NCBI GenBank assembly: GCA_965153285.1
Contig: OZ229111.1
Direction: 5' to 3' (one strand)
Origin: Podarcis tiliguerta
Taxonomy: Eukaryota
Length of the DNA stretch: 64,000 nt
In this document: piece after piece, positions 17,032-58,564 of the stretch
Layout of the letters: each line of letters opens with the position of its first letter
Numbering within the stretch: the first letter of the stretch is position 1
The notes under the pieces: model-generated
The model's database searches: none
What the model saw: the letters and a program-made list of their open reading frames with translations, nothing else
Told to the model about the DNA's origin: nothing
Program-made: the position numbers and the translations under genes

Positions 17032-17820
17032 CTGGAAACAAAAAGATTATTACAAATTCAGTCAAAAATCTTTGCTACTCTTTGCTACTGGTTTCTTATC
17101 TGCACCTAGCAAGATTCCCCTAATTACAGAAGCCTAAACCATGGGTGGAATTGAATGCAGCATGAAGTGGGTGTGTGGGTGTGCACAGAATGAACGCCAC
17201 TCACACAACAAGACTTCCCCCATCCTCCTAAACCTGCTCTGGGGGTTCCCTCAACCTTCCAAAGCAGAGTTAGGGGGAAGCACATGGGAACATGGGGAGA
17301 GGAGGGAGAGTCTCACTGCATGAGTGGGCCTTGTTCCATGCACACAAAAACTTAGCTGAATCCTACTGGATGTTGCTAAGACAAAATGCAGGCTGTTTTG
17401 ATACCGTAACAGCATCTGCGTAATAGTTGCCATACAGTTTCCCAAAAGCTCAGGCCAATTCTAGTGACAACTTTCTATAGTAAAATGCAAGCGATGGAAT
17501 TCTTAGTCCTGGAGAGAAGTTATCGAGACACATGGTGCATTTCAATGGCTGCAACAAAGCGGGTCTGGCCTAGAGCACTGCTAGGATGAGACTGCTAGGG
17601 ATCATACCCAACCCATGCAAAGCAGCTTGGAGGAAGAATGACATAAAAGTTTAACAAATAAAAAGTATTTAATTAAATCATACACAAGCTATTCTGAGCA
17701 ATTTGTAGGAAGAGCAACATACAACGTCAGTTGTTTTTTTTTAGGTTTTTTTTTACTCAGTTCCATCACAGCACAGCAAGATTCCTGCTGCTGTTCTCTC
17801 GCCATCTGCCCATCTCTTAC

Positions 17821-18000
17821 CGCCATATATGCTGCGCAACCAGCACTCCGGGTTTTGGCTTTCGAGTCCACCAGCCTCCCACTGATCCCGAAGTCACACA
17901 ATTTGATTTGCCCCCTCTCATCCAACAAGATATTTGAAGGCTTCACATCCCTATGGATGACACCATGCTTCTCTTTCAGATAGTAGAGCGCTTTGACAAT
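17821..18000 (-). CDS. MAP2K7: MAP2K7 exon 8 (HRD, DFG, SKAKT activation loop)
   Basis: [60 protein letters not shown]; 180 nt. Confidence 0.97.
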
Positions 18001-19244
18001 CTGAAAGCAACACATCGGAAACAATGCGGAAGAATTAATCATTGCTCACTATAAGGAAAACAACTCAGAACTAGTCTAGAACTCATGATACCCTTTTATC
18101 AACGTGCCTGTAAAAACATGTGCTGCTTAGAGAACAAAGGTTATGCACTCAGCAATCAGTCTGAGGCTTTCGTGATACTTGGAAAAGACAGTTTCAGCTA
18201 TCTGGGGCAAAACGTCTTGTATACACAACAACTTGTGGGGAGACAGCGTTACAGCACAGCCCTTCAGTCATGTAGATTACCAAGCAGTTTTCAGAGATAC
18301 CACCGGGGAAAAAGAAAGATGGCATGTTCATGAACTGTTGTTACTATTGAAATGCTGTTACTATTCTTGGAATCCTAAGGTGAGATATTGGGCTTCATAG
18401 TTTTCAGTGGGGTATGATAATACTTCAGACTCTTCAACCGAGCCCTAGATTTTACCACATCTCATTATGCAGCATCAGGGGGGGGGGGCATGGCCAAAAG
18501 GAAATCAAAACAACCACACAGAACAGAGCACCCACTCCTGGGTTCCAGATTTTGCCAAAATCCGCCCAACAGTGCAGTCACTATTTAAAAAATCTTACTC
18601 CCTCTGCTGTCCACAACAGCATTTTGCTCCAAGCAGGGAAGCTTAGCTCATTTCTGTGTGCCAAAAGAGAAACAGACGTGTGAGGCTCAAGTAAATGGAG
18701 GAGAATGGTAGATAAAATAACAAATAACAAGTGGAGAATGGTTGCTGTCCCTTCAAAAACAGCAGAAAACACAGCTGAAAAAGAAAAATACCTGGATGCC
18801 ATAGGCAGGAAGGAGTTTGAAGCACAACACATCTCCTTAAAAGCCGTGATCATGGAAACCTGGAAGCAATTAATGGCTCCTCTGTGTCACAGACAAAACA
18901 AGCCAGATTCTAGCTTGTCATGTTGTGTGGACCTGGACTCAGGGCTTGTTTCCTCCAAACAAACCTCAAGTGGTAACCCAAGAATAAACCTTTGTTACTA
19001 CTCATCAGTTGTTTGGAGGAAACAAGCCATGAGCCCAAGTCCAGGTGACATGACACACCAGATATATAGCTTGTTTTATCTGTGAATCTGCCACAGCTGA
19101 AGCAAGGAAGGAGTACTATTAAGTAGCCTATACCAGCATGCTATTCGTTCCATGTTTAGCATGACATGTGAACTGGGCCAATGTCTAGATGGGGGAAATC
19201 TGGGATCTAAATGTAAAAAGCAAAACAAAAAACAAAACCCTCAC

Positions 19245-37219: not shown

Positions 37220-40129
37220 TAGCAAGCCTCTTTTCACATAATAAAGTGTGGGGTACAGGGCTGCTAGATGCTGCAATAGAGCCAGGATTAACTCATGCAG
37301 CCCCACAATCCTCCTCACATAGTCTCTGAATACATGGAAGGGTTATCAGAAACCTCCCCTAACTAATTACACACACATAACCTACTAACCTATGGTAACA
37401 TACACAGTGTAATCTCCACTTCCAGCTTCTAGACTCAGGATTGAAAGAAGCTACATCCAAGCCACAAAACCTCAATGGAAAGTGGAACCAGAAAGCATTA
37501 CACTCACATTAAACCCACAACTAGTTGTAGGAGCTAAAGCATCCCTTCCCATCCCCCACCCCCGACATCCTGCACCAGGTGAGCTGATTTGAAAAGTGGC
37601 TCAAAACTGAATCTGTTCTTTGTTCTTTATTGGATATTAAAGAACAATTCAAATATTAGCATTACACTATTGGAACTGCTCGTCTATATCCTGGATTCAG
37701 AAAACCCCAGTACTATGTAGATACAAGAACCACGTGGGTGCATGGGATAATATAATTACTTCCCACACCACCAGGATAAGAAACAACCACATTCCAATTT
37801 CAATCTCAGCAGAGATCATGTAATACAAGGACCAGAAAACAGAAGAGAATCCCATTCTGTCTCTGGCCAGGACAGCAGGGCCACTGGGAACCTGCACCCC
37901 CTGCCTCACAGGAAGTAAGGCAAAAGGGAGACCAGTCTGGCCCCATTCATCAGCCAGAGAATGAGCAGCTGCCGGAATTTGCTTCCTCCCTCCCCCTTGC
38001 TTCTAGAAAGAACACTCAACTTCAATTGCCAGTTGCCCTGAGACTAGAGAGCTGATGAAAAGCAAGCTCTGGTCCCATCCAGCAGCTGCTAGATTGTATG
38101 TGTGAATTGGGGGTGGGGGTGGGGGGTTGTATTGTTACCTCCTGCTTGTAAGTTGCCTTGAAAATTGTTTGATTGAAAGGTGGGACATAAATCATCAAAA
38201 TTAATAAATAAGCATCCACTCACATGATGTTTGTTTGTGCACATTATCACGGCACTGCAGGTCCAGACAGTGTTGAAATAGCTCCCATGCTCCAGAGGTA
38301 ATTCAACTTTAAAAGCAGTGAGGAACAGATGAGCTTCACATTTTTCCTCCTTTAACTGACTTTAAAGGGAAATCTTCCGCCTTTCTCAGTGACATAGCTA
38401 CTTCTGGATTCTGCTCCAGCAGTAGGCAAATGCATGCAGTAGAGGCAAATGCAGGGACAGAGACATCCCAGGCACTATGCTGAATGGGGTAGAGTCTACC
38501 TACCTGCACAGGTAAGAGCCCTGTGCCTGCACCAAAACTTTGAGCTGTCCATGCTTAAATCTCAGTTGTTATAATTGGAGATTTGCTCCAGCCATAGTAA
38601 GACTATCAGAGGTACTCTGATCAACATATTAAGCCATTGGCTTGTCAGAAAATATTTATGATTTAGATTTTTTGTTCATTTAACTCTCGCCCTGGCAATT
38701 TCACCTTGGCCACACAAGTAAGTGCCTTATTCACAGAGACAGACTATACAGCTAGGATAATCTATTGCCAAACAATTAGAAATCAGATTTAAAAATATTC
38801 CAAATCTTTTCAATGTCACTATCATTGTACTATACATTCTATGTTGCTTATGACAAACTTATACATGTTATCAATACACTTTCTAATATTTTGTCCTGTG
38901 TGCCAAGTAAACTAGTAGCAATACAATACAATTACAGGGGGAAATCCTTCAGTGATACAAAAAAATATTATTCCATGTTAAATTTCAGCTCTGTATCTCA
39001 AAACATGGGTCAAACAGCTATAGTAAGCATAAAAACTTGAGCTGTTGGTTGATCATGAAAATTTTAGTCTGTTCAAAACCAGTAGCTCAAGTTTGTAGGT
39101 TTTGGCCCATACTCTACTCTACTGACTGAGCTTTTCTGGCTGTGAACAACCCTGACAACTTTATTAAAGGGAGGCCTATAAATATGCCAAATAATTAAGT
39201 TCCTCCCTCAGCTCTCTTCTAAGTGAATATATTCACATCTTGCCATCAGTGATTCCCAAACTGCATGCTGGAGCATCTAATGTGTCATGAGAGAGGCTGA
39301 AGTGTGTCTTGAAAGAATTAAGTCACCATATTGGATGCCTACACTTGTCTATATCCCTCAGCATATGGAAGCTACAGGTAAGTCCTTGCCATAGTCCATG
39401 GTACAATTGGCAAGTGCTTAGTCTTCCTAGAAACACCAATGAAGATAACTAAACAGAAACAGTAAACCAAGATGCACTATTAACTAGACTATGACACAAG
39501 AAGGATCCCTGACACACATCTGAGTATAGGGTGAAAGATGCATTCAATTTTAATCCAAGATGGGGTGGGGAAACCATATGAGTTTTGGAAGCACTGCTAT
39601 ATACACAATATGGAACTTTCCTGTATTTAAATTAGAACTTAAATAAAGAGCTCTTGTGAACTTCTTTGTTTACAAAAAGATACTAGTCCAGCAAATGACA
39701 GGAACCTGATCTAGAGAAGCATACACTTGGGGACATTTCTGAGCACAGCATATCCCTATTTCATGGTATTCCTAACCCACCCCTCCTCCCTCTCCATTGC
39801 AGAGTGTGAGCAGTTGCTTAGACTTCCCTAACTTTAAAAACATAGTTATAATATGGCAATTGGGGGATCCTAAATCCACTTTTACTTCCTCCAGTATAAC
39901 AGTTACAGTATAACTCCTTGTATATCAGTTTTTCTAATCAGAATACAGTACATGGGAACTCCTCTTGGCCCCACGAAAGCAACTCTGAGCTCTAAGTACT
40001 GTCCTCATTTTTAAAGAAAATCTCAAAGAACCACGGTCCACTAACGCCATCACATCATAAGCTCAACACACAGGTGGTTTCCGATCCCCAGGAAGATCGA
40101 TTAGCCTAAGGTCCCCAATGACCTCCTGT

Positions 40130-41120
40130 CGGTGCCCCCCACTGATACACTCATTTCTTCTCCTTCCACCCTGAGTCCTCCTATAAAAACCCACACGCAG
40201 ATCATAGCCCGGGCACTAGGTCCCAGGTCCCAACTCTGTTCCCTACATGTTCCTTCCTTCCCGAACTCTTCCCCGCCCCCCACGCCCACGCCTTCCTCCA
40301 AGTCCCTTCCCCACTGGATTCTTTACCTTTCCCCTGGGTCTTCTTTCTCCCTGCCCCGGGGTGTCCTGGCCTTGGGCCTCCACCTCCCTCAGACTCCGTG
40401 GTAAACAAGAGCCCCCTTGTTTCCCCGCCCCGGGTTTCCCGACCCCTTCGCTTCTCCGGGAGGACCTTTCTCTACCGGCCCCTCTCCGGGGCAGCTCGGC
40501 TCTTCCCATCCCCGCCCCGCATCCCTCCGGCCCTGGGGCTCCTGTCCAGGCGGGCCCGTGTCAGTCGCCCAAGCAGGGGGGGGGGGCCTTCCGCGGAGCC
40601 TACCCTGCCGCCGCCCCCGTTTCCCCCCTCAAAGCCTCCCTTACTAGGCCGAGTCCTGGCCGGACTGATGTCCAAGTTGAGGTCGATGCGCCTCCGGGCC
40701 TCCCTGTTCTCCTGCTTCAGCTTGGCCTCCAAGCGGGACAGTTTCTGCTCCAGCGAGGACGCCGCCATCTTCCCCCCCCTCCCCCGGAGCCGCCGACGCT
40801 GCCGCCACCGCGCAGCCAGAATACACAAACACCGCAGTGCGCACGCGCCGAAAGGACCAACCAGGCCACCATATTATCATCCTCCTCCTCCGCCCACCGC
40901 AAAGGCACGGCTCCACTTTTGCCCGCTGTGCTTGTTTTGCCTCGCGGCTTTTCCTGGCTCGCGCATGCGCGAGGGCACCAAAGTGCTGCCCGAGCTCAGT
41001 ATCAACGCGGCCGCGCCGTCAATGATATTTTGGACGTTCTCCTCGCCAGTATTCGTGCATCTCCACTCAGCTTTGATGGGGACTAGGGAGCATGTCTGGG
41101 TGTCATGACGGGTCGGAGGC
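40130..41120. promoter_or_regulatory. CpG island / MAP2K7 promoter
   Basis: High GC and CpG around exon 1. NRF1-type GCGCATGCGC at 40961-40970; YY1-type AAGATGGCGGC over the start codon. Confidence 0.85.
40645..40768 (-). CDS. MAP2K7: MAP2K7 coding exon 1
   Basis: MAASSLEQKLSRLEAKLKQENREARRRIDLNLDISPARTRP; Kozak AAGATGG; 124 nt; donor A|gtaagg. Confidence 0.97.
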
Positions 41121-41135
41121 GTGTTAGAAGATGCT

Positions 41136-41274
41136 GCCCTGTTGCTCAGTCAATAGAACCTGAGGCTCTTAATCTCAGGGTCCTGGGTGCAAGTTCCGCG
41201 GGGAGCAAAATATTACTGCAGGCGTTGGAGTAGATGACCCTCTGGGTCCAACTCTACAGTTCTGTGATTCTATG
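41136..41274 (+). mobile_element. tRNA-Lys-derived SINE with CR1-type 3' tail
   Basis: Degenerate tRNA-Lys(CTT) head (CTCTTAATCTCAGGGTC) followed by TAGATGACCC...TCCAACTCTACAGTTCTGTGATTCTATG. Confidence 0.75.
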
Positions 41275-41819
41275 GCACGTACTTGAAGACCAGCGGGAGC
41301 TGAACTGCTCCAAATACGGAAAGAGCATTTTTTTCCCTGTCTGCGCTTGGGTTTCCTTTGTGCTTCTTTAGAATTTGTGTACAGTACTTGTTGCATTTAT
41401 ATGCCGCCTTTTCTCCCGTCTCTCTCCCCCACCCCCCGCCTGCACTGTTCTGGGGGTTCTCCCCACACTCCGGAGCAGGATGCATTGCACTGCAGGGCAT
41501 TGCACTAGTGGGAGCTGTCGCACTGACTTCTGCTAGGTCCGACCTGTTATATCAAATAGGAAACCAGGAAGCGCAGATAGGGAACCAATGGAACCAGCTA
41601 CAACCTCATGAAAGGTCGCTGGGAATCACAGTTTGCTAGGTTTTTTATAAGGTTGTCTATTTCTTGGTATTGTGGAGTACCCATGATAGAATGTTTGCTG
41701 GGACATCCAGAGTACAGGTCTGGGAGTCGAAAGAGCTGGGCTTATATTCCTTATCGGAGTTGCTGTGGATCTGTTTCCCATCTAAAATGTGAACTGCAGA
41801 CTTTTAAGGGTCTGGTGCG

Positions 41820-42062
41820 AACATAAGAAGAGCCTTCTGGCCCATCTAATCCAACATCCTGTTCTCACAGTGGCCACCCAAACACCTGTTGGAAACTCAC
41901 AAGGAGGACAAGGACACAGCAGCTGGTATTCAGAAGCATTTTGTCTCCAGCAGTGGAGGCACAGCTAGTAGCCTCTGACAGCATCCTCCATGAATCTGTC
42001 TAACATTTTGTCCATCACTGCCTCCTGTTTCATAGTTTAACTATGCGCTGCATGAAGAAGTA
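41820..42062 (-). mobile_element. CR1-like 3' fragment
   Basis: acataagaagagcc...ccaacatcctgttctcacagtggcc; reverse complement resembles 62100-62160. Confidence 0.55.
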
Positions 42063-44088
42063 CCCTGGAAAGCATGTTATGAGATAACAGCTACCAAAGT
42101 AAAGAGCAAAGCAAGCCTTTATTGCATTCTCTTATACGGTGATCAAGTTTAAGAAGAAAACTGCGTGTATATTTATATATGTGCACACACGCCTCCATCC
42201 TAAGACAGACACATCTTTCATTTTAAATATATGCCTTCTACTTCAGGGGTGGGGAACCTCGGACCCTCCAGATGATGGATTCCAACTCCCATCACCATCA
42301 GCTGGCATTACTAAGAATCAAGGATGATAGGACATGTAGTCTAGAAATGTGTGGAGAAGGACCATGGGTTCCCCACACCTTACCTACTTGATTCTTACCT
42401 ACATAAAAATACATATACAGATTGTATCAGAAGGAAATGTCGAATCCTTACAGACTCCTAGAATTTTTCTGTGGAAGGTGCAATGCTGGCGGGGGGGGGG
42501 GGGCATGATGCGTCAATTAGTTTTACGTACTGGTTTGACTTTCCTGCCATGGTCTGTCATCTCTAATTCAGATAACATCACCTGCGTGACTTTAGCTACA
42601 GTTAAGGATGTTTTGCCTTCAGCTAGAACATTCTGATAATAATGGTTTCTTCCAAGAAAATGCAAACCATAACAGGCCATTTCATTTCTATGGGAGTACA
42701 GTACTTTTTGTCTTCTGAGTTCTACTATGTTGCTCCTTTCTGTTTTTTGCATTCTTCCTTGTTTGTGTTTAAAATAAGGGACATTGTCCTGAATTGTTTT
42801 TGGAACTGGGGACACCACAGAGCTGTCTCATTTAACTAGAGACTACTAAGGTTACTTTGTGAGCTTGTTCTCCCAGCTTATCCACACTTCCTCTCATCCT
42901 GCTGCTAAAGAGCAGATTTCCAATTGGAAAGGAGCGGGGCAAGGGGGGAACTGCTTGGACCCATGCCTTGAAAGTGTGGGTCATGCAGAAATCTGCAGGA
43001 AACTACTTGGACCCATGCTTTCTAGGCATGACATAAGTGAAAGTGTGGACTAGCCCTTCGTCAATCTGCTTACCAGTTAAGAAGACGGCAATCCTATATC
43101 CACTTACTTTAGGAAGCCCCATTAACCATAATAGAACTTCTGGATAAGCATGTATAGGATTGTGCTGTAAATCATTGTTTCTGACTGCAGGGCTACAAGG
43201 CCTCTCCTTTTTTATATAGGTTATGGTGATTTTTCATTCTTGCTGTAAGAAACACCTCTTTTCTTATGTCACTGCCTCATTGACACATTTTTCATATATC
43301 CTTAAAGTGTCACCCCTCTAAGACAGGCAGGAAAGGGAGATGTAGGAGGACTTATCCTCTTTGTTTTGGCAGAAGGGCTTGTTGAACCCACACTTGTTTC
43401 ATTAACATATGAACGGCTTGGAAATAGAATCATAGAATTATACGGTTGGAAGGGACCCCAAGGGTCATCTAGTCCAACCTCCCGCAATGCAGGAATTCTG
43501 CCCACAGCCGTCCCAACCTTCTGGTTAACAGCCAGGCACACTGATGGCCCATTGTGCCATCAGATGACTAATATTCTCCTTTGGTTTCAGAAAGTGGATC
43601 ACTTCACTACCTACAACTCCTTACACTCTTAAACTGAAACTGTAGAGTCCTGCAATTCTTTTTTTACAAACAAACATTGAAAAGATCATTTGGAGAAAAT
43701 GTTACAGTTTTCTACATTAATTTGTATGTGCTCATGTGTTTACTTTCAGCATAGCTCAGGGAAATCATGCCAACTCAAATCTGCTTCTCTGTTAATATCC
43801 CAGGGCTAGAACAGATGCAATAAATGCTACAGCAATCCTATGCATATTTACTCAAAAGTATGTCCCTATTGGACTTATCCCCAGGTCAGTGTATTATTTG
43901 TTGTTGTTGTTTTAAGCAGAAATACAGAAGAGGCTTTGGTTTCTATTGAAGTTTTCCAATTATTGGTGCCAATTCCTTGATCCCTTCCCCCACCCCCAAA
44001 CACAGACACACACACACAGAGAGAGAGAGAGAGAGCTGTTATTAACCCCAGGGAGGAAAGTTCACAGGCAACACAGGTACCTGTTGTT

Positions 44089-44094
44089 TTTATT
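44089..44094 (-). terminator. Candidate polyadenylation signal of the LRRC8D-like gene
   Basis: Minus-strand AATAAA about 630 nt after the stop. Confidence 0.3.
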
Positions 44095-44459
44095 GCAGAG
44101 CAGCTAATAAAAACTACTGCATTAAAACAGAAACGAAAGTTAAAGGATCCAGTTGTGAATCTGCCTTATCTTCAGCCCTCAGTTAATCAGAATATCAGAG
44201 GCTCCTTAAATTGGATCAGACTATTGCTCTGTCTAGGTCAGTATTACTGACCGGCTGCAGTTCTCCATGGTTTCAGACAGGAGCCTTTCCTAGCCCTAAG
44301 TGGAGATGCCAACGATTGAACCTAGCATCTTTTGCATACAAAGCCCATGCTTAACTATTGAGCTGTACCCCTTCTTCTATATTCATATCCATATGAAATC
44401 CATATTCATAATCCCAGCCCAACAAGGACAGGTCTGAACAGTGCATCTTTCATCTTGCC

Positions 44460-44726
44460 AAAGTTGCTAGAGAGATACTGATGGAGACCCCTGAGAGAGA
44501 CAGCCCCAGGTTGTAATGTCAGGAAATGTGATGTGGAATACTGTGGGCTTTCCTAGGTCAGTGGGTCCCATCTTGACCAATGAGGATTGAGAAAGGTTAG
44601 TATACCTATTTTTCTGGCTGCTTTAGTCTGGGACTGTTTGCAAGCTTTGGGACTTCCATTTCACAGAAGAGGGCCCTAGGTAGCCTGGCAGCTTGTGAAG
44701 CCTTAGTTCTCTGATGCCCTTGAGTA
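44460..44726 (-). pseudogene. Decayed remnant of the first LRRs of the LRRC8D-like gene
   Basis: Collinear peptides in shifting frames: IDTQGH, ELRLHKLPG (44683-44709), LPRALFCEMEVPKL, EKIGILTFL, VFHITFPDITTW, SLRGLHQYLSSNF (about 44460-44498). They match LRRC8[27 protein letters not shown] and [12 protein letters not shown] in this window. Confidence 0.75.
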
Positions 44727-45890
44727 TCAATGCACATGCAGCTGCAGCCCTTCAATACTTGCCTTGTGTTCAAGGCCCACATCCAGCAAAGAGCTCTTGC
44801 TCATGGCTGAGAGGAAGATGGCAAACCGCCAGGAGTATAGTTGGTCGCACTGATCAGCCATGTGCAGGAGGAAAGCAAAGTCGTTGTAGACATCTGGGAT
44901 GCCAAGAAAGTGACTGTCCTCTCGCATTTGCTTAAAGGAATACTTCTGCAGCGGCTGCCGCAGCAGCCACATCAGTGGGTAAGCCCCCACCACCCCATAG
45001 AGGAATACCAAGAACAGGTAGGTCACCATCAACTTCTGCAGAATGAAAGCCAAGCTGTGGTTACAGAGGAAAACAGAGTAGCCGGTGAGGTTCTCTGTGT
45101 CCAGCCAGCAAACATGTTCAAAGGAGATGGCTCCTATGCAGTTGGAGGTGTAGCCCAGCACAGTTAGGATCTTGGCAACTTTGAAGATTGTTTGTCCCAT
45201 GTAGACCATATAAATCAAGCTGGCACCTTCAGCATGTGCCCTGAATCTGCAGATCTTCTCAAAGAGTGCCCGGCCCTGCTCCCTCTCCTTCCAGTCAAGG
45301 ATAGGAGAGGATGAAGGGGAAATAAATTGTTCCTGACACCCTCTAGTATCCGTGGTTTTGGGTAGGTCTACGGAATTCTGGTAGCCCATTTCAGAGACGG
45401 CCTTGATGGTCCAAGGGGACTCGAAGCATTTCATGAGGATGGATAAGAAGTGTTCGATCTTTGAGGACGTCTTAGGGTACCTGAACCAGAAGTTGCTGCT
45501 TGCCATTAAAACCAGTGAGTTGACAAGTGCTAGGTAAGGAAAATACTTGGAGAACCAAGGCAAAGCATTCTGATAGCAGACATGGTTTATGTACAGGTAC
45601 TGCTGGTAGTCAAGGTTGATTGGGCGTCCACTGTTCTCAGCAGAAAACTCTTCATTGGTGGCACTGTCCATAGCTCCAGGCTTGAGCATAGCTGCTGTGG
45701 TCTCATTTAGCTTGTAATTCAGTGGCAAGCAGGTCATATGGTCAACAGAAATCAGCAGAGTACCTGAGAGGAGAGAGACCATAAGCATTGCTACTACCAA
45801 GTAGTCCATCAGGACATCCCACCAAGGCTTTAGAGTCTGGAACCGAGCGTGGGCATCACCGAGGAAGGTCACTTCTGTCAGGTTAAACAT
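44727..45890 (-). CDS. LRRC8D-like paralogue, pore domain only (387 aa, no LRR domain); functional gene or young pseudogene
   Basis: Open ORF MFNLTEV...[12 protein letters not shown]...NLDYQQY...WFSKYFPYL...[15 protein letters not shown]...DFAFLLH...LQLHVH*. Acceptor ctcctag|TG-ATG at 45893/45892. The N-terminus and single coding exon resemble LRRC8D/B rather than A/C/E. Confidence 0.8.
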   Translation of the reverse strand: MFNLTEVTFLGDAHARFQTLKPWWDVLMDYLVVAMLMVSLLSGTLLISVDHMTCLPLNYKLNETTAAMLKPGAMDSATNEEFSAENSGRPINLDYQQYLYINHVCYQNALPWFSKYFPYLALVNSLVLMASSNFWFRYPKTSSKIEHFLSILMKCFESPWTIKAVSEMGYQNSVDLPKTTDTRGCQEQFISPSSSPILDWKEREQGRALFEKICRFRAHAEGASLIYMVYMGQTIFKVAKILTVLGYTSNCIGAISFEHVCWLDTENLTGYSVFLCNHSLAFILQKLMVTYLFLVFLYGVVGAYPLMWLLRQPLQKYSFKQMREDSHFLGIPDVYNDFAFLLHMADQCDQLYSWRFAIFLSAMSKSSLLDVGLEHKASIEGLQLHVH

Positions 45891-45977
45891 CACTAGGAGC
45901 AAATGGTAAGTGGGAATTGAGTAACATCCTTGGCTATTGCACTGAAACAAAGTCTGCTTGTTTAGCACGTTTAGCTA

Positions 45978-45980
<3 letters not shown>

Positions 45981-46036
<56 letters not shown>
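45981..46036. repeat. (TA)n(CA)n compound microsatellite
   Basis: Seen directly. Confidence 0.95.
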
Positions 46037-46503
46037 CCCCCTAAACTGTGAGCAATACAAAGTTACACGGAACAATATAAAAAGTTAAACATTAAAACTG
46101 TTCAGCTATAAATGACTAAAATACAGAACTGGTCACACTTCAAGGAAGGCTTGGTTAAACAGAAATGTGTTTGAAATTACAAAACCGAAGGCGCTTGCAT
46201 AATGCACATTGGGAGGGAGTTCCATCATTTTGATGCTGCCACACTGAATGCTCCTCTCCTGGTAGTTGTACAGCGGGCATTGTGTGGCACTATTGACAGC
46301 GCCGTCATTGATGAACAAAGTGGTCAGGCATAACCCAAACTTAGAGACAGTACAGTTATAGCGAGGCTTTCCATACTAGGAAAGGCTTGCCTTGACCTGT
46401 TGAGTTTCTGCCTGCCATACAGCTTCCAAAGACACAAGAACCTCCTGTTTCCTGAGCGTCAACCATAAACCAAAGTCTAGGCTGCCATCCTGCACCCACT
46501 TAC

Positions 46504-46559
46504 CTGCGAATAAGCCCTGGTAAACACCAAGAGACCTTAGGGAAGATGTATCCTGGCTG
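46504..46559 (-). other. Candidate 5' UTR exon of the LRRC8D-like gene
   Basis: Strong acceptor tttgcccttcttttccccgtag| and consensus donor GCAG|gtaagt; 56 nt. Confidence 0.55.
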
Positions 46560-47215: not shown

Positions 47216-47520
47216 CCGTATTTTTCGCTCCATAAGATGCACCTGACCATAAGATGCACCTAGTTTTTAGAGGGGGAAAGCAAGAAAAAAATATTCTGCG
47301 CAGAGCATGTAAGCGGCTTTCGCTTTTCTTGCTTAAAACCCTTCCATCCCTTCTCCCGCTTCACTGTGTGTGGCTCTTGGGGGCTTTTCCGCAAGGTGGG
47401 AGAAGGGACTTGAGGGGCTGCCCTTCTCCATCCTCGGGGAAAAGCCCCCAAGAGCTGCACACACGCTCCACGTGACTCTTTAAAGGGAGCGCTGAGCAGA
47501 GCCGGTATGCATCCCAGGTA
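47216..47520. mobile_element. Related Tc2/pogo-like element with one end only
   Basis: ta-CCGTATTTTTCGCTCCATAAGATGCACC start, then a different internal sequence; right boundary uncertain. Confidence 0.6.
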
Positions 47521-47658
47521 ATTTTTTAAAAACAACCCTGCGTTTTTATTGTGGCTTCCTTGTTATTGTTTTTAACATTGCATTTTAGTTTGTTTTTGTT
47601 ATTATTTTATCCTGCATGCTGTCTTGATTATGCTTTTGGCGCAGAAGAGCAGGATATA

Positions 47659-47917
47659 CCGTATTTTTTGCTCTATAAGATGCACCAGACCATAAGACGC
47701 ACCTAGTTTTTGGAGGAGGAAAACAAGAAAAAAAATATTCTCAATCCCAGAAGCCAGAACAGCAAGAAGGATTGCTGCGCAGCGAAAGCAGCAATCCCTC
47801 TTGCTGTTCTGGCTTCTGGGATAGCTGCGCAGCCTGCATTCGCTCCATAAGACGCACACACATTTCCCCTTACTTTTTAGGAGGGGAAAAGTGAGTCTTA
47901 TAGAGCAAAAAATACGG
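47659..47917. mobile_element. Tc2/pogo-like MITE, copy 3
   Basis: Same TIRs and TA TSD; 259 bp. Confidence 0.88.
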
Positions 47918-55025: not shown

Positions 55026-57278
55026 TCACTGATCCTCCATTTTCTCCCTAATTTCCAAAGGCAACGCCTCATAAAGATTGCTCTCCACCAGCAGGCCACT
55101 CCGCTTGAGCACAGGGCACTGGCCAATCTCCAAGGGAAGGGCCTGAAGGGGGTTTCCTCTCAAGTCTAGCGTGGAGAGCGAAGGCAGCCAACTCACACGG
55201 TCAGAGAGGCGATGCAGTTTGTTGTGTCCTACTTTGAGAACCCTAAGCTGCTTGCAGAAGAAGATTTCATTTGGCAGTGCCTCTAAGGAGTTGTGAGAAA
55301 TGGCAAAATGCTGAAGGCTCTGCAGGACTCCCATCCCGGGGGGGATGACCTGGATATTGTTATAGGAAAGGTCCAAAGTGTGCAGCCTAGAACACTGGAA
55401 TAGTTGGGAAGGGAGGACCTCAATGCGGTTATGGCTGAGGTCAAGCTGCTCTAAGGTCTTGAGCTTGCGGAAGTGTTCAGGAATGCTGGAAATGTGGTTG
55501 TGCCAAAGTTTGAGGCACACCAGCTTGCGGCAATGCTGGAAGCTGATGATCTCCGCAATGGACTGCAGCTGGTTATCCTTGAGGTCCAACCGCTGCATGT
55601 TCACCAGGCTGAAGACAGCATGGGGGATGCGTTCCAGGTTGCAGTTTATCAGCTCCACTTCTTGCACAGAGAAGAGCTTCTTGAGGTTGTTGAGGGTCAC
55701 TAGCTTAGTCCCATCGTTGTAGATCCTGAGCTTCTGCAGATGGGCGGCAACGTCAGACACGCTAGGTGGCAGTTTTGAGATGTTGCTGTGCAGAGTCAAG
55801 GTCTTCAGATTCCTCAGCTCACGCAGGTTCTCCAGAGTTCCTGCCCGGCCCATCTCTGGACTGAAAAGTCCCGAGATGTGCAACTCTTCCAAGCCTCTCA
55901 AGTTGTAAGTCCATAGTGGTATATCTTTGATGTCATCAAACTTCACAGTCATTACCTTCAGCTGCTCACGGAAGAACATAAGAGAGGTGAAAGAGAGCTT
56001 GACGGGAGAGTTGATCAGTGTGAGCTCCTGGAGCTGGGCCAGCTGAGTCACTGAGGGTGGGAATGTCACATCTTTGAGGAGCTCCAGCTTCAGGGACTGC
56101 AGCTCATTCAGCTCAAATGTGGTGTCAGGCAACCCTGGTAGCATGAAGAGATGGAGCTCCAGCCGGCCTTGGGCGTTGGTTTGCAGCTTCTGCCGCAGTT
56201 TGTCCACCGTCCACTCATGACTGAGGTTGATCTGCTTGAGTCTGAACTCGCTGACCTCGGAAAGGAAGACAGCAAAGCGCTTGGAGTAGAGGGAATCATA
56301 CTGGTCAATGAGGTGGAGCATGAAAGCAAAGTCGTTCTTGACGTCAGGAATGTCGCTGATGCCTGTCTCGTTGCGTGCAAATTGAAAGGAGTACTCTTTC
56401 AGCGGCCGGTGAAACAGCCAGTAGAGCGTGTAGAGACACGTCATGCCGTATATGCCAAGGAAGCAGATGTAGCAGATGGCCAGTTTGGAGAAGAGGTGGG
56501 CTTTGGTGTGGTTGCAGCAGAAATGGTCATAGCCCGTCATGTCCTCCATCCTGACAGTGCATGGCACAATGAAGCTGATATTGGAAACCAAGGCTGCATT
56601 GTAGGCAATGATGACGAGAAACTTGAAGACTTTGAGAACGGTTTGGCGGATATACATGGTGTAAAGGATGTCTCCTTTTTCAACGTGGAGCCGGAACTTC
56701 TTCACCTTTTCAAAGAGAGCCTTGGCCTGCTCCCCTTCCTTTTTGTCCAATAGGCTAACCGGGGAGGACTCTGAAACCTTCTTTTCTGACACCGATCCCC
56801 CGGGGGGGTTGAGTTCAGCTGTCTCGCTGGGAGCACTGCTTTTCCTCCTCTGGTACCCCTTCTCTAAGAATGCATTTTCCTGGTTATCCCCGGAGACTTC
56901 AGAGATGGCTCGAGTAGTCCAGGGCGAGTCAAAGCACTTGCTCAGGATGGAGATAAAATGCTCAATCTTGGAGCTGGTCCCAGGAAACTTGAACCAGAAT
57001 GAGGTGCACGCCATGAAGATGAGGGTGTGAATGACCACGAGGTATGGGAAGTATTTAGCGTACCAATGGAGGGCCGTCTCATAGCACATCTGATTGATGT
57101 AGCTGTACTGTTGGAGGTCTAGGTTGTTCTTCAATCCATTCATTCGCTGGTTGGCAGAGGGTCCTACTGGCTCAGAGACATTGGCTCTCTTTTTCGTGAA
57201 ATCTTCACAAGATGCACCAGTGAAGGTTGTGCCATCAGGCACATGGTTGGGAAGGCAGATAATCTTATCTTGTGTCAC
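55026..57278 (-). CDS. LRRC8E: LRRC8E second coding exon (EL1, TM2-4 and full LRR domain)
   Basis: 750-codon ORF starting at acceptor gacag|GTG. Motifs [43 protein letters not shown] and tandem LRRs. Spliced total 796 aa. Position upstream of MAP2K7 matches human LRRC8E synteny. Confidence 0.93.
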
Positions 57279-58426
57279 CTGTCACATCAGGTTAGGAAAG
57301 AGAAGAGAGGAACATGATATAAAACAGAGGCTAGTGGTAGAACGCAACAGTTTATATGAGGTGGGGATGAACAAATACAGCCTTGAAGTGGCTGAATGGA
57401 CTGTACCTCTTCATATATATTTTTAAAGTCCCTGCAGGTAGAAAACTAGCATAGCAAGGAGTAGGCTGGTCTAGAACAGCTCTTTCTGATGTGCTGGTTT
57501 CACTTTTAAGGAGTTTTTGTTCTATATGTTATTTAAAAAGGCATCCTCGCCCAACTGTAGTCTGAAATGATAAAGTCTAATATCTAATACTGCTTCATGT
57601 ATAGTCAAAATGGACCTAATTTAAATGAACTGATAATCTAGTCTTAATACTAAAGGGGCCAAGGGCAAATCTGCCCCTGTATAAATCTGCAAATAACTCG
57701 TCTGCATGCATTTTCTATGCTGTGTCACCTATAGGGCTGCATTTTCAATACTGATTACAGAATGAGGGGGTTGCATGAGACATGTCTTATCTTTCCTTCC
57801 CAAGGATCTAACCCTCTGTGGGCTTCTTTGGATCTGAGGAGAGTTATGATAAAGCACTGGCAAGAGAAGGTGAAGTCATGGCACAGAGGTCCTTCCCAGT
57901 CCTGCTATGGTATCTATCACCCTTCACACGGGATGGAATCTAAAAAGTTGTGGCTCCCGGGCTGCATGAATCCAGTATACTCAGTACTCAATCCCTCATC
58001 TCTGCCACATAGGGTCTTCAACGTTTGGAGAACAGAGCCTCCCTGCCTACGTTACTGAGGCTGCACAGTGCTAGGCCACCACCCCTTACAAGTGGTTGGA
58101 TGCAGAGAATCCAGCCCCCCAGGCTGTAGAAGTTGACCATTTCTGTGCTGGGGTCGTTTCCACCCTTGCCCAGACTGCCCCCAAATATTTAGAGCCTCTT
58201 CTCCCACAGGCAGTGAGTGGATCATCACCCCAAGATTCTAATGATTCCAAGATTCCAATTCTCCTTCCTTGGAGGTTCTTAAGCAGACGTTGGATTGCCA
58301 TCTTTCATAGATGCTCTAGCTGAGATGCCTGCATTGCAAGGGTCCTTTCCAATTCTACAATTCTCTGATTCTATGACACCATGCCAGCATCTAGGCACTG
58401 CGTGGGCTCCCCCCATACTCACTCAC

Positions 58427-58564
58427 CTGCAAAGTGCAGCCAAAAACTCCTATCATCAGCATGGCTATGGTGATGTACTCGGCCAAGACATCCCACCATG
58501 GCTTGAGAACCTTGAAAGCAGGCTGCTGGTCTGTGAACTGCTTGAATTCGGCCACCGGGATCAT
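58427..58564 (-). CDS. LRRC8E: LRRC8E (VRAC subunit) first coding exon, 46 codons
   Basis: Encodes [46 protein letters not shown]. Acceptor ttttggcag|GCAGT-ATG (exon starts 58569); donor CAG|gtgagt at 58427/58426. Confidence 0.95.

Follow-up and report, generated by a model that had tools for sequence, protein, structure and literature searches.

As the VRAC literature deals with LRRC8A to LRRC8E and assigns gating and sensing to their LRR domains, an open reading frame that appears to encode an LRRC8 pore with no LRRs attached raises the question of whether such a gene is real, which paralogue it descends from and what its product might do. Sybodies, fluorescent tags, disease mutations and engineered truncations have all served to test what the LRRs do. 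The frame in question lies in the window analysed here (the whole 64,000-nucleotide stretch of contig OZ229111.1 of Podarcis tiliguerta, assembly GCA_965153285.1) and had been described in an initial annotation, made from the letters alone, as an intact LRRC8 paralogue consisting of the pore domain only.

The uninterrupted 387-codon ORF was borne out in both coordinates and length (44727..45890) and was assigned to the minus strand, with 387 codons counted from the first ATG (45890) and a TGA at 44727-44729. A longer version can be read from an upstream GTG (44727..45968, minus, 413 codons), its C-terminus being GLQLHVH followed by the stop. Protein searches returned a Podarcis raffonei “LRRC8D-like isoform X1” of 97% identity that is also 387 aa long. 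A candidate 3′ splice acceptor (pyrimidine tract and AG; 45893..45917, minus), seen by eye 2 bases ahead of the ATG, may be used in vivo, and a candidate AATAAA poly(A) signal, also found by eye, lies at 44089..44094 (minus), approximately 630 nt past the stop. The protein proved to be an LRR-free LRRC8 pore domain, as had been claimed: its sole Pfam match was to PF12534, “Pannexin-like TM region of LRRC8” (E 5.9e-110, 368 bits with a cutoff of 25), none of the Pfam LRR families was matched in the ORF, and neither was any pannexin or innexin family profile at E <= 0.01, PF12534 being the only family reported.

The gene had been placed between LRRC8E and MAP2K7, and this arrangement was recovered with all three genes on the minus strand. 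Its upstream neighbour, identified as LRRC8E by ORFs, Pfam and trees, is full length and LRR-bearing (main exon 55026-57278, N-terminal exon 58421-58564, minus); the LRRC8E ORF matched ten Pfam families, nine of them LRR families, and clustered with frog LRRC8E in trees. Downstream, an ORF starting MAASSLEQKL (40472..40828, minus) sits in a G+C-rich stretch (GC 0.56 at 40001-42000) and is taken by us to hold the first coding exon of MAP2K7, a further exon of which would presumably be that at about 17689-18042 (minus). The order LRRC8E then LRR-less gene is also implied in the rattlesnake Crotalus horridus by a fused gene model. A recent duplication of the neighbouring LRRC8E was rejected as the origin of the LRR-less gene, the two proteins being 40% identical and distant from one another in the tree.

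Phylogenetic analysis with IQ-TREE (ultrafast bootstrap / SH-aLRT) instead identified the squamate gene as orthologous to a sixth LRRC8 paralogue, old and without a name of its own, which is annotated “LRRC8D-like” (hereafter D-like) and is sister to LRRC8D. Sharks, coelacanth, lungfish, salamander, caecilians and turtles all have this paralogue at full length (~790-835 aa), LRRs included. The squamate genes formed one group (100/100) that was sister to the full-length turtle genes (99/99), within a tetrapod D-like clade (98/100) and a clade of all D-like sequences (97/92) that holds the orthologous full-length genes of Emys orbicularis, Chelydra and axolotl, with LRRC8D forming its own clade (97/98). 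The placement was the same after removal of the turtles, and the possibility that the squamate gene is a copy of LRRC8D was rejected by the AU test (delta lnL 44, p 0.004 for grouping with LRRC8D). The turtle D-like proteins are approximately 792 aa long and LRR-bearing; the Chelydra model is not a fusion, because its LRR domain is closest to D-like LRRs (52-55% identity, versus 42% to LRRC8E). The LRR half was lost on the squamate stem. No description of a natural LRR-less LRRC8 or of a sixth LRRC8 paralogue was found in the literature searched, and LRRC8 is absent from the text of a squamate gene-loss paper (PMC13005343).

The squamate protein has kept the pore domain complete: its N-terminal segment, all four TM helices, extracellular loops with four cysteines and a glycosylation sequon, an aromatic filter residue of the D type (Tyr95) and the greater part of the cytoplasmic linker. 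An AlphaFold model built on 87 aligned rows (pLDDT 63, moderate; an earlier 19-row model with pLDDT 37 was discarded) contained four long helices in agreement with the four TM segments proposed initially: TM1 at residues 23-49 (45744..45824; block-mean pLDDT 77-94 over residues 21-50, squamate entropy 0.27 over residues 21-40), TM2 at 112-133 (45492..45557), TM3 at 225-252 (45135..45218) and TM4 at 281-311 (44958..45050), all minus. The four predicted extracellular cysteines correspond to C54 (TCLP), C105 (HVCY), C261 (HVCW) and C276 (FLCNH), which are invariant in 47 LRRC8D and D-like rows, and the NETT sequon is N62. At the constriction of the selectivity filter, where LRRC8A has Arg, mammalian LRRC8D has Phe143 and reptile LRRC8D has Tyr, the squamate protein has Tyr95 (codon 45606..45608, minus), as NLDYQQY aligned with LDFQQY (F143) of bat LRRC8D; a selectivity-filter role has been described for Phe143 of LRRC8D (PMC13586245). 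The NLDYQQY motif, the N-terminus MF(T/S)LTEV and a YPKTSS motif are common to full-length D-like and squamate proteins. LRRC8D, the sister paralogue, has ~49-50% pore-domain identity to the squamate gene and also has an aromatic residue at the filter position, but it differs in possessing LRRs and in that its first extracellular loop is much longer. LRRC8D chains were the best sequence match in the PDB (phmmer, E 5e-120), and the Foldseek matches listed for the pLDDT 63 model were all LRRC8 chains (best E 1.4e-24, TM 0.72), so that the modelled fold matches that of solved LRRC8 pore domains. One 458-aa LRRC8D chain, 9T5P, was considered as a possible engineered truncation and set aside, as the string “truncat” does not occur in its paper, which lists 9T5P as LRRC8D (PMC13586245).

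Full-length D-like proteins continue into a complete C-terminal LRR domain of approximately 400 aa, which the squamate proteins are without. In an ungapped alignment to the axolotl D-like protein, “HEW” corresponds to H376-K377-A378 and the stop falls 9 residues after the W position, close to the 10 or so that had been estimated. Residues 361-387 (44730..44810, minus) form a drifting tail, what is left of the linker that led to the lost LRR domain. In no other segment are squamates more variable (entropy 1.35-2.24) than both full-length D-like proteins (0.78-0.88) and LRRC8D (0.13-0.36). Squamate stop codons fall 19-51 residues past the linker FLS motif in nine tabulated species, and the remaining tails are also diverse. 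Directly past the P. tiliguerta stop, frameshift-tolerant alignment detected what remains of the N-terminal LRR region in decayed and frameshifted form (44609..44726, minus; z 2.0-7.9 relative to 40 shuffles against eight D or D-like LRR N-termini, the alignment ending near 44609 for most queries), and colinear tblastn pieces of it were spread over three different frames. A possible further remnant at 44515..44541 (minus), VFHITFPDI against VLHIKFTDI of axolotl D-like, was colinear in tblastn (67% identity over 9 aa) with an E of 7 that alone is not significant. A third candidate, at 42802-42966 (E 0.049), was rejected as noise level, a match on the opposite strand reaching E 0.45. Because the ORF has no LRR Pfam match and only frameshifted remnants lie past its stop, the P. 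tiliguerta gene counts as an LRRC8 on its descent and its pore domain, though not on full architecture.

The same region bears on whether the gene model is incomplete, with the ORF as a first coding exon only, spliced to exons for another C-terminal domain. Such splicing could use a GC-type donor-like AAG|GCAAGT after K377 (~44762), 10 codons ahead of the stop, and the “isoform X1” label in P. raffonei implies additional isoforms, while one Crotalus annotation fuses the LRR-less gene with LRRC8E. However, the 3.6 kb from the stop to the MAP2K7 promoter contained no LRR-coding sequence beyond the frameshifted remnants, the region of the GC-donor motif is not conserved in squamates, in which tails and stops vary, and the NCBI model of P. 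raffonei has its stop at the same position as the P. tiliguerta ORF. We regard an incomplete model as very unlikely.

Pore-only orthologues (359-432 aa, 70-97% identical) were present in every squamate lineage sampled, comprising geckos, skinks, a cordylid, lacertids, an amphisbaenian, anguimorphs, iguanians and snakes, and PF12534 was the only Pfam family in those of Podarcis, Rhineura, Pogona, Phrynocephalus, Elgaria, Varanus, Sceloporus, Anolis, Hemicordylus, Lerista, Sphaerodactylus, Eublepharis, Python, Protobothrops and Crotalus. Human is not known to have such a gene between LRRC8E and MAP2K7, and no mammalian counterpart surfaced in protein searches; the D-like clade was seen in neither mammals nor birds. 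A metagenome contig, the sole match when DNA of a squamate orthologue was sought, was rejected: at 43% identity it is not an orthologue, and it is possibly host or even human DNA.

The case for selection was made from protein trees and ORF integrity. Over the squamate crown tree (3.68 amino acid substitutions per site over 372 codons, 15 lineages), 73-80 nonsense events would be expected under neutrality and 0 were observed (P ~1e-32), a count carrying some ascertainment bias in that predicted proteins are stop-free by definition; the alignment of the squamate proteins over the pore domain, with gaps of only one to four residues, keeps this bias small. Site-wise conservation was correlated with that of full-length D-like proteins (rho 0.44, p 1e-19) and of LRRC8D (rho 0.36, p 2e-13), and 71 sites were invariant over 47 vertebrate sequences. 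That the ORF is a decaying relic, a unitary pseudogene left open by chance, might be argued from an LRR half that is clearly dead and from a substitution rate several times that of LRRC8D; the absence of nonsense changes from all 15 squamate lineages, and a conservation profile like that of functional relatives, bring this reading close to refutation and make it exceedingly improbable. On one species pair compared for both genes, the pore domain changed ~5.6 times as fast as LRRC8D (0.32 versus 0.057), so that the constraint on it is real but looser than that on LRRC8D. Comparative sequence evidence thus argues firmly for a protein-coding gene maintained by purifying selection. The initial view of an intact LRR-free pore gene therefore stood, as a gene under purifying selection and not a recent unitary pseudogene, with no stops in the pore region of squamate relatives and an intact ORF in 15 lineages. 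The gene is not a lineage-specific offshoot of LRRC8E, the trees placing it in the sixth paralogue.

The explanation that we consider probable for the locus as a whole is that a selected squamate orthologue of the sixth paralogue, its LRR half lost, acts as a partner of LRRC8A that alters VRAC gating. The most likely role, as we infer it, would be to remove one LRR domain per subunit from channels containing LRRC8A, so that gating is altered. The protein would insert into the membrane as other LRRC8 subunits do, and through its pore domain it would join LRRC8A, and perhaps other paralogues as well, in heteromeric VRAC-type channels in whose cytoplasmic LRR ring each LRR-less subunit would leave one empty position. 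Because gating and activation have been tied in published work to the way LRR domains pack against each other and to their mobility (for LRR-domain mobility, PMC13586245), such channels might be expected to have a changed basal activity or swelling sensitivity. The change could be in either direction.

Like pannexins, the squamate protein is of the four-TM, large-pore kind and has no LRRs; unlike them, it matches PF12534 only, and it is an LRRC8 that was truncated secondarily rather than a pannexin. The pore domains of LRRC8 proteins are themselves said, in work by Abascal and Zardoya from 2012, to be pannexin-derived, and the squamate protein might have regained the ancestral architecture as a self-sufficient channel, homomeric or otherwise independent of LRRC8A, that forms a large pore in the plasma membrane or an organelle and is gated in its own way. 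Non-A LRRC8 subunits, however, reportedly require LRRC8A to arrive at the plasma membrane (Voss and colleagues, 2014), and there was no sign of a new gating module in the sequence. The whole pore domain with its aromatic D-type filter residue is conserved, solved homomeric LRRC8D and LRRC8C channels exist, and pore-only constructs of LRRC8C gave stable oligomers (PMC11729881), all of which would suit a channel of this kind; homomeric LRRC8 channels are nonetheless described as non-functional or abnormal (PMC10049205). A self-sufficient channel is in our judgement unlikely.

For a partner of LRRC8A, a close comparison is with truncations of human LRRC8C, namely the pathogenic LRRC8C-trunc (~400 aa) and the engineered t419 and t379 (PMC11729881). 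These are, like the squamate protein, pore-only LRRC8 subunits that end in the same linker, and the C-terminus of the lacertid protein lies a single residue beyond the t419 equivalent (I358 corresponding to LRRC8C V390). LRRC8C-trunc and t419 both assemble, with an effect on LRRC8A/C currents that varies with the end point: t419 with LRRC8A gives very low currents, and LRRC8C-trunc, ~19 residues shorter than t419, is constitutively active (PMC11729881). Because the lacertid end point is close to that of t419, which assembles with very low currents, we favour a damping role, in which the lacertid protein would act as a brake. This functional analogy is drawn from LRRC8C, a different paralogue from the squamate D-like gene. 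The LRRC8C truncations are also de novo or artificial variants of human paralogue C, one of which leads to dominant disease, whereas in squamates the D-like product is fixed, under selection and approximately as old as the crown group.

The very low currents of t419, with its nearly identical end point (PMC11729881), would also suit a non-conducting decoy that holds LRRC8A or other subunits back in the ER and so lowers the number of surface VRACs through assembly and trafficking. Assembly and trafficking are compromised in the ebouriffe mouse, whose LRRC8A is truncated after residue 442 (PMC11729881); ebouriffe resembles the squamate gene as a natural loss of most of an LRRC8 LRR domain, but it is a recessive loss of function in the essential A subunit and has not been evolutionarily retained. 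A pure decoy would have no need of the extracellular filter residue, loop cysteines and glycosylation sequon that the squamate protein conserves, and we think it improbable that the protein is one.

The squamate proteins amount to a natural experiment on the role of the LRRs, in which the LRR domain was discarded and the pore kept under selection in all squamate lineages sampled. Only tentatively would we put forward the wider claim that an LRR-free LRRC8 pore has been working in lizards and snakes approximately since crown squamates, as a dedicated VRAC regulator or a self-sufficient pannexin-like channel, together with a sixth paralogue of ancient gnathostome origin that had gone undescribed in the VRAC literature. 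Since the squamate protein ends near LRRC8C t419 and close to the pathogenic gain-of-function truncation, lizard and human proteins can be compared residue by residue. The sixth-paralogue clade bears in addition on the evolution of VRAC subunit diversity and on the naming of the “lrrc8d-like” genes of zebrafish and other fish.

The open reading frame was found to run uninterrupted for 387 codons on the minus strand, from a first ATG at 45890 to a TGA at 44727-44729 (44727-45968 with its upstream extension), and its description as an LRR-free pore domain in the initial annotation was borne out by Pfam, where PF12534 ("Pannexin-like TM region of LRRC8"; E 5.9e-110) was the sole family matched and no LRR family was reported. 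The extracellular cysteines noted earlier were C54, C105, C261 and C276, the NETT sequon was N62-E-T-T, and the protein terminated 9 residues after the W position of HEW, close to the ten first estimated. The four expected transmembrane segments appeared as long helices (23-49, 112-133, 225-252 and 281-311) in an AlphaFold model built from 87 aligned sequences (pLDDT 63, pTM 0.61; with 19 sequences only, pLDDT was 37 and the model unusable). Foldseek placed LRRC8 pore domains at the top (9dx7_E, which is the D chain of LRRC8A:D; E 1.4e-24, TM 0.72), and sequence matches to solved structures reached E 5e-120 for chains of LRRC8D and ~1e-100 for those of LRRC8A.

The proposed gene order of LRRC8E, the window ORF and MAP2K7, all on the minus strand, also stood. 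The minus-strand ORF at 55026-57278 matched PF12534 and nine LRR families and was therefore assigned to LRRC8E. Identity between this neighbour and the window gene was only 40%, so the window gene is not a recent tandem copy of it. The two genes also differ in intron structure: the first ~48 residues of LRRC8E lie in a separate exon (58421-58564, minus), ~1.1 kb upstream of the main exon (55026-57278), whereas the homologous N-terminus of the window gene shares an exon with the rest of the protein. A 1209 aa Crotalus horridus model (P0226, KAL7989310.1) consists of LRRC8E, 79% identical to LRRC8E of the window, followed at residues 818-1209 by a protein 70% identical to the LRR-less one, and thus order and orientation hold in a viper too. 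The fusion itself looks like a public annotation error.

Full-length relatives were sought by exhaustive HMMER and word-index protein searches, and the closest formed a set of "LRRC8D-like" proteins of ~790-835 aa, separate from LRRC8D proper, which was also present in many of the same species. D-like members came from lungfish (two copies), coelacanth, many sharks, rays, a chimaera, Polypterus and gar, from axolotl and two caecilians, and from turtles of both suborders (Emys, Chrysemys, Gopherus, Dermochelys, Eretmochelys, Chelonoidis, Carettochelys, Emydura and Chelydra). The turtle proteins carried LRR Pfam domains and aligned with axolotl D-like to the very C-terminus; the Chelydra LRR domain was 52-55% identical to amphibian and coelacanth D-like LRRs, ~51% to LRRC8D and 42% to LRRC8E and, being nearest to D-like LRRs, is the gene's own and not a fusion artefact. 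A careful IQ-TREE run on 55 rows of pore-domain sequence (LG+C20+F+G4; ultrafast bootstrap/SH-aLRT) gave support of 100/100 for squamates, 100/100 for turtles, 99/99 for the two together, 98/100 for tetrapod D-like, 97/92 for all D-like and 97/98 for LRRC8D, with D-like and LRRC8D as sister clades. As squamate and turtle stems were both long, the tree was rebuilt without turtles, and squamates again grouped with amphibian D-like (SH-aLRT 99); a grouping of squamates with the LRRC8D clade was rejected by the AU test (delta lnL 44, p 0.004). Together, the trees and full-length relatives place the window gene as the squamate orthologue within an LRRC8 paralogue group of ancient gnathostome origin, in which the LRRs were lost only on the stem of squamates (or lepidosaurs). 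The protein searches made brought up no D-like protein from crocodilians, birds, mammals, anurans or tuatara, which is suggestive, not proof, of absence from these groups.

Where D-like and LRRC8D lie bears on whether the split between them arose by whole-genome or local duplication. Coelacanth (Latimeria chalumnae) D-like, LRRC8D and LRRC8B-like (P0225, P0241 and P0216) were recorded on contigs of identical size (172,207,807) and so are probably on one chromosome, a warning against any simple ohnologue account. The contigs that carry D-like and LRRC8D differed in size in sharks, axolotl and a caecilian. The two Protopterus annectens copies (P0050 and P0224; 72% identical, same chromosome-scale contig) are a lineage-specific duplication. 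Fish nomenclature fails to separate LRRC8D from D-like, since two teleost proteins, "lrrc8da" of Xiphophorus and "lrrc8db" of Chanos, fell within the true LRRC8D clade in our trees and ray-finned D-like proteins (Polypterus, gar, Amia and an 887 aa Perca protein) are named "LRRC8D" or "LRRC8D-like".

Squamate orthologues were retrieved by a length-restricted protein search followed by cluster look-ups. They were 359-432 aa long and carried PF12534 alone. Annotation pipelines already predict them, in most cases under the name "volume-regulated anion channel subunit LRRC8D-like". The window comes from a lacertid, and its exact protein was not found in the collection searched; that of Podarcis raffonei, also 387 aa, was 97% identical. 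The search also gave Rhineura, Pogona, Phrynocephalus, Elgaria, Varanus, Sceloporus, Anolis sagrei, Hemicordylus, Lerista, Sphaerodactylus and Python, and the look-ups Eublepharis, Protobothrops and Crotalus, spanning Gekkota, Scincoidea, Lacertoidea, Anguimorpha, Iguania and Serpentes. Two names look like annotation errors, "Lrrc8e" for the LRR-less protein of Crotalus adamanteus (P0349) and "subunit E" for the D-like gene in the Chelydra UniRef entry (P0345). A JGI metagenome contig (Ga0181612_147779) codes for an LRRC8 relative that shares 43% identity with the query and is not an orthologue; the contig is thus vertebrate DNA, which could be host or human. In the literature searched, reviews refer to LRRC8A-E, and no description of a natural LRR-less LRRC8 or of a sixth paralogue was found.

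The squamate proteins were colinear over the pore domain as far as "...FLSAMSES.LLDV.L", after which tails diverged and stop positions differed; in nine tabulated species they lie 19-51 residues past the FLS motif. The 3.6 kb from the stop to the MAP2K7 promoter was searched by tblastn, first with the LRRs of LRRC8E and next with the LRR domains of seven D and D-like proteins, and no LRR-coding sequence was found besides weak remnants. These remnants lie in the 327 nt past the stop, which still look like the beginning of the LRR domain, in shifting frames (z = 2.0-7.9 above shuffles when aligned to eight D and D-like proteins with frameshifts allowed, at least 3.4 for seven). Colinear minus-strand tblastn pieces were 44724-44689 (LKGIRELRLHKL), 44683-44609 (LPRALF..CEMEVPKLANSPRLKQPEK versus LPKAVFEMMDLEVLKLELISDVKLPAK) and possibly 44541-44515 (VFHITFPDI versus VLHIKFTDI); with the ORF they occupy three different frames, requiring at least three frame changes. 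In Hemicordylus the frame still continues into the remnant, where "...VEMRLCKLQGFARG" resembles turtle "LELRLCALPALPQ" (z 3.5). The present stops are therefore lineage-specific, and the change that first disabled the LRR half was probably located further downstream. By eye, SINE-like elements (~44250-44385 and 43440-43520) occupy the expected LRR-exon space, one with a tRNA-like head and another with a "ggactagatgacc" core common in sauropsid SINEs.

Selection was judged from three protein-level tests, standing in for DNA dN/dS. The squamate crown subtree held 3.68 amino-acid substitutions per site over 372 codons and, at the nonsense-to-missense ratio of single-base changes in the window ORF's own codons (0.054-0.058), 73-80 nonsense substitutions were expected were missense changes neutral; none was seen (P ~1e-32). 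The stop-free ORF was checked directly in the window and other squamates were judged from predicted proteins, whose pore-domain alignment gaps were only one to four residues, so gene predictors hid no disruptions in introns. Column entropy in squamates correlated with that in full-length D-like proteins (Spearman 0.44, p 1e-19) and LRRC8D (0.36, p 2e-13), and 71 positions, the four cysteines among them, were invariant across all 47 sequences. The pattern was inverted only at residues 361-387 (1.35-2.24 in squamates versus 0.78-0.88 in D-like and 0.13-0.36 in LRRC8D), as expected where a linker to a lost domain becomes dispensable. A pseudogene is thereby essentially excluded, and Podarcis-Rhineura path lengths (0.32 versus 0.057 for LRRC8D) indicate looser constraint than on LRRC8D.

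At the selectivity-filter constriction, which is Arg in LRRC8A and, in mammalian LRRC8D, Phe143, which forms a wider hydrophobic filter (PMC13586245), the window protein has Tyr95 (NLDYQQY). Reptile LRRC8D also carries a Tyr at this position. Two otherwise highly conserved sites bear changes that are fixed in squamates and specific to them, N for H at 124 and C for Y at 348. LRR-less human LRRC8C variants were studied by Quinodoz, Rutz, Dutzler and colleagues (PMC11729881): the disease variant LRRC8C-trunc (~400 aa) assembled like wild type and with LRRC8A gave channels active in isotonic conditions, the clean truncation t419 assembled robustly with very low currents and little swelling activation, and t379 did not fold, while the Ebouriffe mouse LRRC8A truncation is a loss of function (PMC11729881). 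Activation has been linked to LRR-domain mobility (PMC13586245). As window I358 corresponds to LRRC8C V390 (RFA-V-FLS) and V386 to L419 by ungapped alignment, the lacertid protein is a natural near-equivalent of t419; gecko proteins stop ~8-10 residues earlier. By this analogy, the most likely explanation is that the protein co-assembles with LRRC8A as a modulatory subunit, which would leave positions in the LRR ring empty. Its likeness to t419 tips the balance slightly towards a damping effect, and an activating one is possible. Rivals to the modulatory partner are a self-sufficient channel of pannexin-like type, a decoy acting in the ER and an incomplete gene model.

Minus-strand sequence around the gene offered a pyrimidine tract with AG (45893-45917), two bases 5' of the ATG, as a candidate splice acceptor, an AATAAA (44089-44094) ~630 nt past the stop as a candidate poly(A) signal, and a consensus donor, CAG|GTAAGT (~46500-46515), ~600 nt 5' of the ATG, as the candidate end of a non-coding first exon. 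A long (GT)n(AT)n microsatellite (45975-46045, minus) lies ~90 bp 5' of the start codon, and another repeat was seen by eye in two copies upstream of the gene (~47230-47330 and 47650-47760). Around the first exon of MAP2K7, the G+C-rich stretch 40001-42000 (GC 0.56 versus ~0.42 elsewhere) holds long ORFs that overlap one another on both strands and look like artefacts of base composition.
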